A stretch of 63,172 nucleotides of DNA, the filler included, from Octopus bimaculoides (lineage: Eukaryota): assembly GCF_001194135.2 (NCBI RefSeq). It is 6 parts of 6 records of this genome, joined end to end, with 100 filler letters (N's around TTAATTAATTAA, not from the genome) between each part and the next. Parts side by side here need not be neighbours in the genome. Positions count along the whole stretch, not along the records: positions 24,793 to 30,166 come from NC_069002.1; 5 more parts are not named here. One strand, written 5' to 3'. A program made the translations under genes and the position numbers. Within the stretch, counting starts at the first letter, position 1; each line of letters opens with the position of its first letter. Below, piece after piece: positions 24,793-30,166 of the stretch. Under the pieces are notes generated by a model that searched no databases, was not told the origin of the DNA, and saw only the letters and a program-made list of their open reading frames with translations.

Positions 24793-24967
24793 GATATCTT
24801 TGTTTAAAATTAATAGAACTCCCTATGTATACCATTTTATGTGAATTATTAATTTTTGTGACTATGCATTTATATACTATATTAAGTCTTTTACAATTGC
24901 CTTGTAAAGGACATATTTTTTAATTTTTACATGAGCAATTATTATTGTTTTTATATTTCTGTTGTGG

Positions 24968-25028
<61 letters not shown>

Positions 25029-25916
25029 TAATAATAATAATAATTATTATTATTATTTGTGATGTATAAGGTATTACTTATTGAATTTGTTGTAGTGTTT
25101 ATTATCTTGGAATTATATGTGTTTGTTGCTTGTGATTTATTGTTTTTATTTTAATATTTTAATATTTTAATTAATATCATCCTATAGCATATTTTATTAT
25201 GTATACCATTCGTTTTCACATATATAATAATAACTTTATACATCTCTGAAGAGCGGAATTACTGCAAATATGCTTGTCTATATTAGATTAGATTATAAAG
25301 GCAATAATATCCGTGAAACGATCGTAAGATGCATTTTAGACTTTCATAATATTTTAATCGAATTATATTTATACTCACTTACGCATACATTTTTATATAC
25401 ATTTATGTACGCATATATTTTTATATACATTTATATTTTTTATATACACTATAATAGACGAAATATTCGGAATTACGATTCTTCTATATAACATATAACA
25501 TTTAATTAACAATATGACTAATTAATCTTTTATATACAAATCGAGAAGAATTCTAGTGGTGTGCTCTGATCTATTTCTCCTGTATTTAATCAGAACGTAA
25601 GCACGAACGAAATTCCTCTAAGTATATTTCATCGAGCTAGCGATTCTTTTCACACACGCCGCCGCCTTTAGAATTCTTCATTATTAAAATAATTACAGAA
25701 TATAATCAGTAAGTGCTATATATAATGTTTCATGTGTTTTTGTTTGTTTTCTTGTCATTCCTTTTTTATTGCTTCATTGTTTTTTGTCTCCTTTATGTAT
25801 TAAAAATATCCATCGCTACAGTGATGAGCCATATCAAGTGTCTCACTGAAGAAATGTGTGTTCCAGTCGTCATGATCCTGTATCTTATTTCAGATGGTGT
25901 TATCATAAATACATTC

Positions 25917-25986
25917 TCCTCCATTTAATACGTTATCCTCCATTTAATACATTATCCTCTATTTGATACATTATCCTCTACTTAAT
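25917..25986 (+). repeat. 19-bp tandem repeat, 3 copies plus a partial fourth
   Basis: Unit tcctccatttaatacatta. Confidence 0.8.
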
Positions 25987-25989
25987 CAA

Positions 25990-26800
25990 GTATCTGTTGA
26001 GTGCTTCATGGGTATTTTGTGTATTTCTACACGAAACATTGGTAAATGGATATCTAATTTTTCCATATATATTTTAATATCTCTTTTAGATGTCGCTCCT
26101 TTACACCAGGAGACAGGTTTGAGTAAAATGACTCTAAGGTAAGAACAACGTATGTACATCTCTTGCAAATGTAATAAAGCTTTGGCGGGAAGTTGGCAGA
26201 ATCGTTCGTACTCTGGATGTAGAAGCTGAAGCGTTGCAGCAGTTGTCCAGTGTTATCGCCCGCCTCTTTGGTTTTCAAAGAGATATTCATGCGAGCAAGA
26301 CCGGAGACCTCTATGACAGTTTATTCATTTTCTTGCTTACCCCAAGTTATGTTGTCCGAGCGGTTATTTTTACATTGACAGATATTCTGATGTTAATATT
26401 CCACCAGTATTCATTGTGTTGATGTCTATGTATGTATTTAACAACAGGGTTTCTTTATATACATTTCAGGACAATCTTACTACCAGAATGGCATTGTATA
26501 TTGTGTTGGCGACAATGTCGTGTCGCATAGGGCGGTAGTACCTTGATATTATTTGGTAGCTGTTAATCCCATGTGTGAGGTCTTCAAAAGTAATAGGATA
26601 TAATGGGGAATAGAATGCCCACAATTAAGCCATATTGTTGCAAGTTTCCAACGGTTTTTCTTTTGTTCACTTCAAACAGTTGAGTTTTGTTTATGAAAAG
26701 CTGTTCCGGCCATCCCCACACTCGCTTCTTTTCACCTTCCTGCTCATCAATCATCATGTCGTTGGACACGAAATGGTAATGGAGGAATTGTTTATGGCAG
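25990..26800 (-). mobile_element. Decayed R4/R2-group (REL) non-LTR retrotransposon 3' region
   Basis: Minus strand with stops and frameshifts: FEDLTHGINSYQIISRYYRPMRHDIVANTIYNAI, EYWWNINI, NRSDNITWGKQE..TVIEVS..MNISLKTKE..LQLLHPEY. Confidence 0.75.
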
Positions 26801-26939
26801 CGTTGAGTTTGTGCATAATGTTTGGGCAAGAAATGAGCCAATAGTTTTCTGTGAACTTTGTGGTTTCATTCGGGGCTTCAGGCTACGTTGTGTGTCAATG
26901 TGACCTTCCATGGAGCTTTTGAATATACTAAAAAGGGCA

Positions 26940-27020
26940 GTCAGATCCCTGCGGGAATCGAAGTGAGGACTTTAAAAGCGTGAACCGAATACCCTACCCA
27001 CTAAACTACGTACCTTCGTC
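26940..27020 (-). mobile_element. tRNA-derived SINE head (family C)
   Basis: Minus strand: gtagtttagtgggtagggtattcggttcacg...ttcgattcccgc. Confidence 0.5.
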
Positions 27021-27525
27021 CATACACACACACACACACACACACACAGACACACACACAGACACGCACACAAACACACACACACACACACACGCACAAA
27101 CACACCAACGCACATATGTATTACATAGAGAGACATGTAGAGAGACATACAATGTGAATTGATATTTTGATATTAAATGAGATTCGTTTATATTCACTTC
27201 TACCATCTTTGTAGTAGCAACGCCAGGAGCAAATTTTTCCCATTTCAAAATGATTATTGCTTTTTATACAAACTTTTACCTCGCCGTCGTTGATGTTCAG
27301 GTTTTACATGGAATTGTAAAAGTATAAAGCATGACTGCGGCTGTAATTTACAAAATATGATTCATGTGATGAATAATGGCACAATCCAGACTGTAGTCTC
27401 TATCCTGACCTCTCTTTTAATATTATACTGACATTCAACTTGTGTCGTGAGTTTGGACGATAGATATCATTCGTCTAATACCTGACAAGCATGAAGAAAA
27501 CTGGCTGGCTCACGATGGTACAGAA

Positions 27526-27582
27526 TCAAATCTATTCAGCTGCATCAAATCTTTTCAGCCGCATCAAATCTTTTCAGCCGCA
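27526..27582 (+). repeat. 19-bp tandem repeat x3
   Basis: tcaaatctattcagctgca tcaaatcttttcagccgca tcaaatcttttcagccgca. Confidence 0.9.
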
Positions 27583-27599
27583 GCGCGCAAGCGTCATCA

Positions 27600-27727
27600 A
27601 TATACGCAAATTCACCTATTGTTTCAACTCTTAAATTTACTTTTACTAATATTGCATCACATACTGATACTAACACAGATTACCAAATACTATAATAATA
27701 AATCTAACAGCATCAATAAACAACAAG
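27600..27727 (+). other. Candidate non-coding 5' exon of the peptide gene (start uncertain)
   Basis: Consensus donor caacaag|gtaagt at 27727/27728, 1.5 kb upstream of the Cys-rich exon, in unique sequence; no ATG in the one long frame open through to the donor. Confidence 0.35.
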
Positions 27728-28016
27728 GTAAGTGATCAAACAACACTTTCAGGCAGGATTTTGCTTTATAATTTCCGGTGGAGCAAAATAATCTTTCAAG
27801 CTGTAAATTATATGAGCGAAAGACTAAAGTTACTTACAATTGTTTTATTCTTTTTTATGAAAGAATGCAAAAATGAAATGAATTCATATTGTTCTCATAA
27901 TGGAATAAATTAAATTCGATTCAAAATAGAATATAATTAAGAGAAACTATATTTTTTAACTATTGTGTTAATGATATTGAGCAGCCTAACTGAGGTGAAA
28001 ACGTATTACAAATCAG

Positions 28017-28350
28017 GGCTACGTAGTATTAACTGCTCATTAGTTTGTGTTACTCGAAGCGCACTTGGGCTATATTTGTGTTAAGGATCTTTCCTTTTGA
28101 TGGGCAACTCGATTAATTAATTTTCATTAACTAAACACTTTGAAACTTCGGACACTGCTAGAATATGTCATATAAAACATCTTTTACTTTTAGCGTTGTT
28201 GAGAAAGTTATTCTATTTTCGAAGTTATTTCGTGTTAAAGTTGTCGTATTTCGGTAATTTCAACCAATCAATGACGTGTATTCAGCTGAATAAAATTACT
28301 GCTGTTGTTTGTCAATAACAACTTCGGTGGTGTATATTTCGTTTGTGTAT
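28017..28350. mobile_element. Probable non-autonomous DNA-transposon-like repeat
   Basis: gaaacttcggacactg...cgaagttatttcgtgttaaagttgtcgtatttcggtaatttc resembles MITE internal sequence; termini not defined. Confidence 0.35.
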
Positions 28351-28593
28351 AGCCAAAAGGATATACACAAATTTTCGATGCTATGCAACTCGCAGATCTT
28401 AAGGATTTACTCATAGACAGACATTAATCTCCATCATTAATAGATGATCTGAAACAACGAGTCAAGAAAATCGTTTTTCTGGTACAAATACAAATAAATT
28501 AAAGTAAATAGAATTGAAAATCATATGAAGGTCAAGATTTCCGTTTTATACATTATTTTCAAGACAGAGAATTGTTTTACGTATCTCATTTAG

Positions 28594-28618
28594 GATGTGC
28601 AGAGAAATAGACAGGACA
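28594..28618 (+). other. Candidate ATG-containing exon start running into an assembly gap
   Basis: Acceptor ttgttttacgtatctcatttag|G ATG TGC AGA GAA ATA GAC AGG ACA, then N gap 28619-28793. Confidence 0.25.
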
Positions 28619-29227
28619 NNNNNNNNNNNNNNNNNNNNNNNNNNNNNNNNNNNNNNNNNNNNNNNNNNNNNNNNNNNNNNNNNNNNNNNNNNNNNNNNNN
28701 NNNNNNNNNNNNNNNNNNNNNNNNNNNNNNNNNNNNNNNNNNNNNNNNNNNNNNNNNNNNNNNNNNNNNNNNNNNNNNNNNNNNNNNNNNNNNGACCGTA
28801 ACAAAAGAATGCAGATTTGATTTCCCGGTTACAAACAAATAATTATTAGTCGAAATGTGCTGAGAATCATGAACCAAATTTGAAATTTATTCCTTTAGGT
28901 CAAAATAGTGGCGATAATTGAAACACAGTCAATCAATAAGTGTGACGTTGAAATTCTGGATATATATATTTATATACCAAGTCTTTAACAAATTCGAGAA
29001 AATACACTGAGTAAAAGTTAAAAGAAAAGAAAAGAAAGAATTGACTTGTGGTACTTGTTTCGGATCTGCATGTTGCGAGTTCAGGTCCCGTCAGATTCTT
29101 TAGTTTTATCGACATCGATAAAATAAATACCATTATCGTTTAATCCCTTTCCCCTATACATCCCTTGCCTTTAATAATGAGAAACCATAATTTAATAATA
29201 TTTTGTATTCTCTACTATATTTTGCAG

Positions 29228-29372
29228 TTACAGTGAAAGGTTTAAGAGAGCTGCTTCATGTTCAAAAGGGAAATGTTGGGGAACTGGACAAAATCGACGA
29301 TGTAAATGCTGCCGCGGTTACGATTGTGCACGTGCACGAAGTTTCTGCTTCTGTTATAATTGGAGGCGGTAA
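29228..29372 (+). CDS. Putative terminal coding exon of a small cysteine-rich propeptide: ...YSERFKR|AASCSKGKCWGTGQNRRCKCCRGYDCARARSFCFCYNWRR*
   Basis: Acceptor ttctctactatattttgcag ends at 29227; phase-2 open frame to TAA at 29370-29372; 8 Cys in the 40 residues after an R-F-K-R site; about 44% GC by hand count versus about 23% in the preceding 60 nt; not microsatellite-derived. Confidence 0.7.
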
Positions 29373-29463
29373 CACCTGGTTCTCGGACTATGATTCATGT
29401 GACTAATAATATTATACTCCAAACTGTAATCGCTTTTCTGTCAGATTAAACCGTGATAAATAC

Positions 29464-29550
29464 TTAGTGCTTTGTTATTTACTGTGCTCTTTGATTTTAA
29501 GTTATACAACGAAACAAATTCTCAGTGCTTCGTTCTTCGCTGTGGTGTTT
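29464..29550 (+). repeat. Two diverged copies of a 53-58-bp unit
   Basis: ttagtgctttgttatttactgtgctcttt... and tcagtgcttcgttcttcgctgtg; homologous to 30070-30166. Confidence 0.65.
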
Positions 29551-29695
29551 GCCTTTAAGTTACGGATATGGGTAGTAAGATTTTACATTGCAGTGTCACA
29601 ATATATATTTGTAAAACAACAATATTGTCCAAGAACATCAACAAAGTACTGCTACTGATGCTGTGTCCTATCCTCCTCATCCTATTACTACTGTA

Positions 29696-29765
<70 letters not shown>

Positions 29766-30069
29766 TTTAAATTTTGAATTCTAATCAATCGTTATATCCG
29801 ATAACAATAGAAAACTATGAATAAATTTCATGAAACTGTGAAATATAAAATATTAACGAACAGATTTTTGATTTTGTAATTTATCCTGGAAAGAAATTCA
29901 CGTTTGTTGCTCCAAGAACGGAAATGGTAAAAGAAGAGACAATCTGTAAACCATAACTTACAACTAACAAACCTAAATTAGTAGGACGATCGTATCTAAT
30001 ATCGACTATATTTATGCTATTAACCCGTCAAATTTTAATGAATTCTAATTAAATAAATTGATTAAAGCA

Positions 30070-30166
30070 TCAGTGCTTCGTTTTTCGCTGTGTTCTTTGT
30101 TTTATTGAACGGTAACAAAATCTCAGTGCTTCGTTCTTCGCTGTGCTCTTTGTTTTATTGAACGGT
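30070..30166 (+). repeat. 53-bp tandem repeat running into a gap
   Basis: Unit tcagtgcttcgttYttcgctgtgYtctttgttttattgaacggtaacaaaatc, period 53. Confidence 0.9.

Follow-up and report, generated by a model that had tools for sequence, protein, structure and literature searches.

Spiralian CCWamides and arthropod agatoxin-like peptides form one protostome family (Thiel et al. 2021, PMC8557429). In their short precursors, a signal peptide is followed by a spacer that is not conserved, then by a basic site and finally by a C-terminal peptide with eight cysteines, whose mature form ends in an amidated aromatic residue (PMC8557429). The peptide is encoded in the last of three exons, behind a conserved phase-2 intron, and no receptor is known for the family. 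Several nemertean and phoronid CCWamide transcripts have a common N-terminus and differing mature peptides (PMC8557429). Here we compare with this gene type a locus of Octopus bimaculoides, found in a window of 63,172 nucleotides (nt), the whole stretch of DNA that was analysed, which joins six parts of six records of assembly GCF_001194135.2. The piece under study, positions 24793-30166 (from NC_069002.1), is AT-rich DNA with microsatellites and one gap of 174 N. Positions 29228-29372 are, we think, probably the last coding exon, at the 3' end, of a gene that has escaped annotation and would encode a small, lineage-restricted prepropeptide, secreted and rich in disulfides. The first-pass annotation of this DNA had proposed the last exon of a secreted prepropeptide, and so it looks: a predicted cleavage site, RFKR, stands three residues before the first Cys, the C-terminus is dibasic and a decayed duplicate lies upstream. 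In its architecture the locus parallels a CCWamide/agatoxin-like gene, from which it may have descended, while membership in the family is unproven.

The terminal exon and its predicted peptide

The exon and the signals that define it are the following.
29218-29227 (AG at 29226-27), plus strand: splice acceptor tattttgcag with a pyrimidine-rich tract, read in the sequence; predicted use in splicing, intron phase 2
29228-29372, plus strand: predicted terminal coding exon, made up of 1 nt ending a split codon, 47 codons and TAA (translation, Cys-richness, GC island)
29228-29233 (AG at 29232-33), plus strand: alternative in-frame acceptor ttacag, with a score similar to that of the first; its use would drop Tyr-Ser
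29238-29249, plus strand: R-F-K-R, fitting the convertase consensus R-x-K/R-R, which ends the pro-region tail YSERFKR (translation; predicted cleavage)
29250-29369, plus strand: predicted mature peptide AASCSKGKCWGTGQNRRCKCCRGYDCARARSFCFCYNWRR, 8 Cys, isoelectric point (pI) 9.6 (translation and computed properties)
29445-29450, plus strand: ATTAAA, possible polyadenylation signal 73 nt past the stop, a weak assignment in AT-rich DNA
29820-29825, plus strand: AATAAA, possible polyadenylation hexamer read in the sequence, equally weak in AT-rich DNA

Translated from 29229, the frame reads YSERFKRAASCSKGKCWGTGQNRRCKCCRGYDCARARSFCFCYNWRR, that is YSERFKR followed by the 40-mer, and closes with TAA at 29370-72, whereas translation begun at 29228 runs into stops. 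The T at 29228 completes a split codon, and the preceding intron would thus be of phase 2. The track of open reading frames (ORFs) had missed this frame, as the first-pass annotation pointed out, because it has no ATG, GTG or TTG start and an ORF lister skips it. The Cys spacing described earlier, C-x4-C-x8-C-x-CC-x4-C-x6-C-x-C, was confirmed by translation, and the 40-mer does hold 10 basic residues (3 K and 7 R) and a single acidic one (D). The exon coincides with a GC-enriched island, likewise already described, with 47-49% GC against 23-38% in the surroundings. A second open frame of 67 amino acids (aa), Val-rich and with a TTG start, overlaps the whole exon on the plus strand (29203-29406); it has no Pfam match and is absent from a collection of 15 billion proteins.

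The acceptor had been called strong. The motif is present, but its AG ranks only within the top 9% of the 220 AGs that were scored in the piece with a crude generic acceptor matrix, which is fair but unexceptional, and we regard the splice site as plausible rather than compelling. The in-frame alternative 6 nt downstream was found where it had been placed, as were the two hexamers 3' of the stop, both of which are commonplace in AT-rich DNA.

R-x-K/R-R is the consensus of furin and other proprotein convertases, and here it sits three residues ahead of Cys1. The number of Cys residues is even, and a dibasic RR stands directly before the stop. With RR trimmed and four disulfides formed, the predicted 38-mer would have a monoisotopic mass of 4336.78 Da, a pI of 9.3 and a net charge of about +7; for the untrimmed 40-mer the mass would be 4648.99 Da. 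The encoded C-terminus, CFCYNW-RR-stop, contains a Trp and lacks a Gly donor for amidation. A structure prediction, suggested in the first-pass annotation, was made with AlphaFold2 from the single sequence; it gave a mean pLDDT (predicted local distance difference test) of 69.5 and four short strands in the predicted peptide, and a Foldseek search of this model against the PDB returned 0 matches.

We envisage that phase-2 splicing at AG 29226-27 would join the exon to one or more upstream exons for signal peptide and spacer, perhaps including 26090-26138 (see below). The signal-peptide exon probably lies outside the piece, and the signal peptide would direct the precursor into the endoplasmic reticulum. 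A convertase of the furin/PC type would then cut after RFKR, a carboxypeptidase would trim the terminal RR, and oxidative folding would give a 38-residue peptide with four disulfides that could serve as an extracellular receptor or channel ligand. Toxin, antimicrobial and neuropeptide roles are not separable from sequence.

The frame is statistically odd for this DNA. Among the stop-free windows of 40 codons in the piece, only the exon has more than 4 Cys, the (CA)n microsatellite aside. In 300 shuffles of the piece that preserved dinucleotides, the maximum was 7 Cys, reached 19 times, and 8 never occurred; among 60,000 frames tested at the base composition of the exon itself, two were open and had 8 or more Cys. 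Tandem Repeats Finder (TRF) detected no tandem repeat within 29228-29372, and Rfam no RNA family.

Microsatellites of the types (ATA)n/(TAT)n, (CA)n and (ACT)23 occupy 24970-25057, 27021-27122 and 29696-29764. The reverse frames of the (CA)n tract contain spurious 'peptides' with 12 Cys, and TG/CA repeats can thus mimic Cys-rich frames. Overlapping the same tract is a sub-threshold Rfam match to SCARNA7 (27070-27211, minus strand; 27.4 bits against a gathering score of 65), which is almost certainly due to chance.

A decayed copy of the exon 2 kb upstream

A further copy of the exon and two flanks with conserved sequence were found.
27215-27355, plus strand: decayed paralogue of the terminal exon, preceded by ctttgtag (translation; collinear Cys codons)
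27356-27407, plus strand: conserved 52-nt 3' flank of the upstream copy (repeat search and blastn)
29389-29440, plus strand: conserved 52-nt 3' flank of the exon, starting 17 nt past its stop (repeat search and blastn)

The two flanks are 77% identical and lie at an offset of 2,033 bp (E = 1.3e-5, blastn of the piece against itself). The upstream copy reads SNARSKFFPFQNDYCFLYKLLPRRR*CSGFTWNCKSIKHDCGCNLQNM..., with a TGA (27291-93) at the first Cys of the CC pair. It has lost Cys1, Cys3 and the RxKR site, and a deletion of 23 nt has removed the stop region. Within the piece, the stop-free pattern C-x(4-6)-C-x6-C-x-C is confined to the exon and this copy; on both strands of a control locus of 57 kb from O. 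sinensis it had one match that was not of low complexity. Counted from the acceptor, the Cys codons of the intact exon stand at 46/79/82/97/118/124 and those of the upstream copy at 43/76/79/100/121/127, codon 76 being the TGA. The two series are collinear and differ by no more than two in-frame indels, of -3 and +6.

Outside the Cys codons, the two copies have little in common. First global and local DNA alignments of their coding parts were non-significant, and tblastn missed the upstream copy; it was anchoring on the Cys codons and the framework pattern that revealed the collinearity. Ungapped identity in register is 40% (p = 0.017) and 55% (p = 0.002) when compared with all other offsets in the piece. 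A value of 72% identity from a gap-permissive segment alignment is inflated and was not used. Coding divergence may possibly have been accelerated relative to the flank, a comparison that depends on the alignment. The sequence leads us to a tandem duplication that took in the terminal exon together with its flank, left the copies 2,033 bp from each other and was followed by the disabling of the upstream one. Kept Cys positions among codons that otherwise match at about random identity would be the trace expected of a constrained disulfide scaffold, and they appear hard to reconcile with a chance ORF.

The assembly gap of 174 N (28620-28793) lies between the two exon copies, and any exon or repeat within it is hidden. 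Directly after the 52-nt flank of the exon begins a unit of about 50 nt (TCAGTGCTTCGTTCTTCGCTGTGCTCTTTGTTTTATTGAACGGT...), present four times, at 29445-29565 and 30070-30166. The two pairs are about 600 nt apart and 80% identical over 86 nt; the unit may be a repeat of local origin or part of a mobile element.

Gene layout and comparison with CCWamide genes

One upstream segment would fit between a first exon and the terminal one.
26090-26138, plus strand: candidate 49-nt middle exon, from acceptor ctcttttag to donor AAG|gtaaga; phase 1 in, phase 2 out

It reads xVAPLHQETGLSKMTL, and its last bases would join in frame to 29228 through a Ser codon (AG|T) ahead of YSERFKR. The donor at 26139 is the best in the piece, within the top 0.7% of its 291 GTs, and no other candidate on the plus strand upstream of 29228 has a donor of that quality. 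The candidate layout would thus be ?/49/145 nt with intron phases 1 and 2 and a second intron of 3,089 nt.

For comparison, we reconstructed the CCWamide gene of O. sinensis (LOC118768477). Its three exons measure 70/52/157 nt and its two introns, of phases 1 and 2, measure 34,541 and 2,251 nt; the precursor of 92 aa is spread over 37 kb (CM016860.1, 87.69-87.75 Mb). The first intron of 34.5 kb indicates the scale on which a missing first exon would be expected here. The likeness between the two loci is one of architecture, for which these neuropeptide genes, and not a venom peptide, offer the nearest known counterpart. In both, the precursor is short (as predicted here) and the 8-Cys peptide is at its C-terminus in the last exon, with a basic cleavage site ahead of it. 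The intron before the peptide exon is of phase 2, verified for O. sinensis and predicted from the acceptor here. The candidate middle exon would also be entered in phase 1 and would measure 49 against 52 nt, and the terminal exon 145 against 157 nt. By eye, the peptide resembles the family in [ST]CSK...KCC...CxC.N..W and in the basic or Gly residues that come next. A multiplicity of terminal exons at one locus may be a further parallel: the nemertean and phoronid isoforms can be read as alternative terminal exons, comparable to the duplicated exon described above.

Differences are found in the position of the cleavage site, which lies seven codons inside the exon and is not split by an intron, and in the Cys framework, in which C-A-R takes the place of the family's middle CxC and the CC pair has an additional Cys in front of it. 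When its TGA was read as Cys, the upstream copy scored 8.5 bits on the family profile (p = 0.004 against shuffles), which is suggestive only. The nemertean 'CCWamide-Prohormone-3-related' peptides, likewise Cys-rich and C-terminal behind an RxRR site, have FWGTG and CC[PS]GYYC, which resemble CWGTG and CCRGYDC here; they differ in having six Cys and a long last loop. Pairwise comparison with them gave p of about 0.04-0.05, a marginal value that is uncorrected for 11 comparisons.

The CCWamide entry of O. bimaculoides, A0A0L8HXQ3, is named 'Agouti domain-containing protein', and its N-terminus (MEIAMFYAFPNSDLISNFGRRPAISGKE...) is unlike the signal peptide of O. sinensis and O. vulgaris. Its first exon has probably been mis-predicted, an example of the poor annotation of such small genes.

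Searches for relatives

No relative of the peptide was found in any collection searched. Pfam returned 0 families at E up to 10, and the Dickkopf_N model did not match. A sequence search of the PDB retrieved only calcium-binding EGF (epidermal growth factor) domains of fibrillin, with E = 0.05 and 1.5. A word-indexed search of 5.8 billion proteins, with the peptide and with the hypothetical exon concatenation, gave nothing, a metagenome scan revealed no locus related to the peptide, and exact look-up of ten ORFs from the piece found none of them in the collection of 15 billion proteins. No copy of the exon or the piece is present in the CCWamide locus of O. sinensis, 10 kb of flanking sequence at either end included. 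Full-text literature searches with the peptide motifs retrieved no paper, and no comparable cephalopod family surfaced in the literature on salivary-gland peptides, as far as titles and abstracts mainly tell.

HMMER retrieved one match among 1.84 billion representatives, a protein of 581 aa with Dickkopf_N repeats (P0001). It matches PF04706 and shares C..GKC.GTG.NR.C.C with the peptide. Its E value of 1e-9 is a sum over six near-identical repeats of about 25-30 bits each. In a search space of about 1e13 (a query of 47 residues times 2.36e11 library residues), a single repeat of about 30 bits is expected thousands of times by chance. We therefore consider P0001 a coincidence of motifs and rejected it as a homologue.

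As a control of coverage, the canonical Octopus CCWamide precursor (PMC8557429 supplement) was retrieved from three sources, namely O. sinensis LOC118768477 (100% identical), the O. bimaculoides UniProt entry and an ORF derived from Logan. The collection thus covers octopus proteomes and part of the transcript assemblies.

Likeness to toxins, antimicrobial peptides and EGF domains

The first-pass annotation had read the peptide as a candidate knottin toxin or antimicrobial peptide and had compared it with conotoxin framework XIII. The loop CC-x4-C with Gly and an aromatic residue (CCRGYDC), the terminal C-x-C, a propeptide that ends dibasic and a cationic mature peptide of about 40 residues, as predicted here, do resemble inhibitor-cystine-knot (ICK) toxins. 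Framework XIII is defined by the Cys order C-C-C-CC-C-C-C, and this order is found; the loop lengths differ from those of framework XIII peptides. The part of the comparison that did not hold is the family assignment: against ICK toxins of the spider omega-agatoxin/U8-agatoxin type and of framework XIII there was no sequence or family-model match, and no solved structure matched. Conotoxin superfamilies, for their part, are defined by signal sequence. An antimicrobial assignment found no backing in Pfam, where no family model matches the peptide, and the frameworks of defensin, big defensin, mytilin/myticin, hepcidin and WAP differ from it in Cys order or spacing.

The part C-x4-C-x8-C-x-C-x2-G-Y fits the EGF consensus from Cys2 to Cys5, and in the AlphaFold2 model the C2-C3 loop is flanked by short strands. 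In contrast to EGF domains, the first Cys is absent and there are three extra Cys; Pfam gives no EGF match, the best PDB match has E = 0.05, and the intron would be of phase 2, not 1.

Alternative explanations

A number of points weigh against a live prepropeptide gene and, in part, against its kinship with CCWamides. Splicing, processing, secretion and function are deduced from the DNA. The peptide is absent from O. sinensis RefSeq, O. bimaculoides UniProt and the Logan-derived ORFs, all of which hold the CCWamide precursor; we see in this a moderate argument for a gene that lacks annotation or has weak expression, but no demonstration of a dead one. The AlphaFold2 model is of only moderate confidence and has no structural neighbour. 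The middle exon is a candidate only, and the chance of meeting such a configuration is estimated at roughly 0.1-0.3. A search of the 4.4 kb upstream for a signal-peptide exon that has a usable donor met only T-rich pseudo-hydrophobic ORFs with poor donors; this is unsurprising, because the first intron of the comparator measures 34.5 kb. As to the CCWamide/agatoxin-like family, its spacing is C-x6-C-x6-12-CC-x4-6-CxC-x6-CxC and that of the peptide C-x4-C-x8-CxCC-x4-C-x6-CxC, and the missing C-terminal Gly would preclude amidation. A hidden Markov model (HMM) of the family, made from 32 mature peptides, gave the intact peptide -1.4 bits, not above shuffles: 10% of full shuffles and 54% of those with fixed Cys scored at least as high. 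Pairwise Smith-Waterman comparisons with the family were non-significant (p 0.1-0.9). Because the defining sequence features fail (profile, pairwise similarity, spacing, Gly and position of the basic site), we do not file the peptide as a CCWamide member; it may be a very divergent, lineage-restricted offshoot of the family.

Could the frame encode nothing at all and be a chance opening in a GC-richer non-coding patch? It is short (48 codons), the Val-rich frame over the same DNA is likewise open, the acceptor score is unexceptional, no homologue turned up in any collection searched and TG/CA-rich DNA does yield Cys-rich frames by chance. We nevertheless hold this to be very unlikely. The shuffle tests argue against it, the exon is free of repeats, and an even Cys count, RFKR and a dibasic stop are an unlikely combination in random sequence; above all, chance is disfavoured because a second, decayed copy with collinear Cys codons exists 2 kb upstream, where the framework recurs in register, adjoining a conserved flank, with in-frame indels only. 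Hardly more credible is a C-terminal exon of a larger extracellular multi-domain protein with an EGF-like or Dickkopf-like tail, in which RFKR would be incidental. The weak fibrillin matches (E = 0.05), the agreement with EGF Cys2-Cys5 and the sole HMMER match, with its common C..GKC.GTG.NR.C.C, all point that way, but there is no Pfam EGF or Dickkopf match at E up to 10, the first EGF Cys is missing, the score of P0001 is a sum over six repeats that singly (about 30 bits) are at chance level, and the exon is part of no annotated octopus protein. EGF exons, moreover, are typically of phase 1-1.

A dead relic has more to be said for it, although we still regard it as unlikely. Both copies would then be remnants of a once functional duplicated exon, the downstream one not yet disabled and without a functional transcript. 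The sister copy has plainly been disabled (a TGA has replaced a Cys codon, and RxKR, two Cys and the stop are lost), the peptide is absent from the annotated octopus proteins and the transcript-derived ORFs in the collection, and no signal-peptide exon was found nearby. However, the exon itself is undamaged: its 47 codons, eight Cys and stop are all in place, and so are the acceptor and the cleavage site. The non-Cys codons of the sister are at about random identity, and neutral decay over a similar time would be expected to have broken the exon as well; absence from annotation counts for less, since small peptide genes are commonly missed.

Two further readings concern what a live gene would be. 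One, which goes back to the first-pass annotation, is a salivary-gland venom knottin or else an antimicrobial peptide of cationic type, its family having no tie to neuropeptide genes. We consider this a doubtful though serious possibility. CC-x4-C and a terminal C-x-C are typical of ICK peptides, the Cys order is that of framework XIII, the net charge is +7 with a pI of 9.3-9.6, and tandem duplication with a kept Cys scaffold and saturated loops is the usual pattern of toxin and antimicrobial families. What speaks against it is that no toxin or antimicrobial family model or structure matches, that a full-text literature search did not find the peptide, that no comparable family surfaced by title or abstract among papers on cephalopod salivary-gland peptides, and that the gene layout points to the CCWamide/agatoxin-like lineage, though that lineage did enter spider venom. 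The other, to which we give a similarly tentative place, is a live member of a rapidly evolving, cephalopod-restricted family of cationic four-disulfide peptides that arose from a CCWamide/agatoxin-like gene by duplication of the terminal exon. One scaffold Cys would have shifted, amidation would have been lost and the loops would have diverged to saturation. The layout favours such an origin from a neuropeptide gene, while the charge, the duplication and the loop divergence may be equally typical of toxin and defence families.

If the prepropeptide gene that we favour is expressed, its product would be an orphan four-disulfide scaffold with no detectable relative in 1.84 billion protein representatives. 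Small Cys-rich secreted peptides are useful ligands (ion-channel probes, drug leads, antimicrobials), and genome annotation systematically misses them. If the link suggested by the layout is real, an ancient neuropeptide gene would have given rise, by duplication of its terminal exon, to a fast-evolving, re-wired paralogue, and such a divergent paralogue could help to find the CCWamide/agatoxin-like receptor. Descent as an offshoot of CCWamides would also be a mollusc parallel to the recruitment of the agatoxin-like lineage into spider venom, with a new receptor or channel target or a role in defence. If the gene is not expressed, the locus is an ordinary decaying duplicate of limited interest.

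Other features of the piece

Besides the exon copies and the candidate middle exon, the piece contains a GC-richer stretch (26150-26965) in which both strands carry a number of interrupted ORFs, 50-85 aa long, MAHFLPKHYAQTQRCHKQF... among them. Six-frame fragments of this stretch match no Pfam family. The stretch may be a decayed fragment of a mobile element or gene. A repeat of the octopus type lies close to the exon and outside the gene; taken by itself, it makes an octopod-like origin of the DNA plausible.
29040-29140, plus strand: diverged copy of a short interspersed nuclear element (SINE) ending in TCGATAAAATAAATACCAT, 80-190 nt upstream of the exon

A metagenome scan for the SINE tail yielded 120 loci, all of them chance matches of 24-28 nt. 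The segment with TCGATAAAATAAATACCAT aligns to SINE copies of O. sinensis and has an octopus-type SINE tail. In O. sinensis, a stretch of 57 kb contains the consensus of this tail, TCGATAAAATAAGTACCAG, five times, where 0.02 occurrences would be expected.

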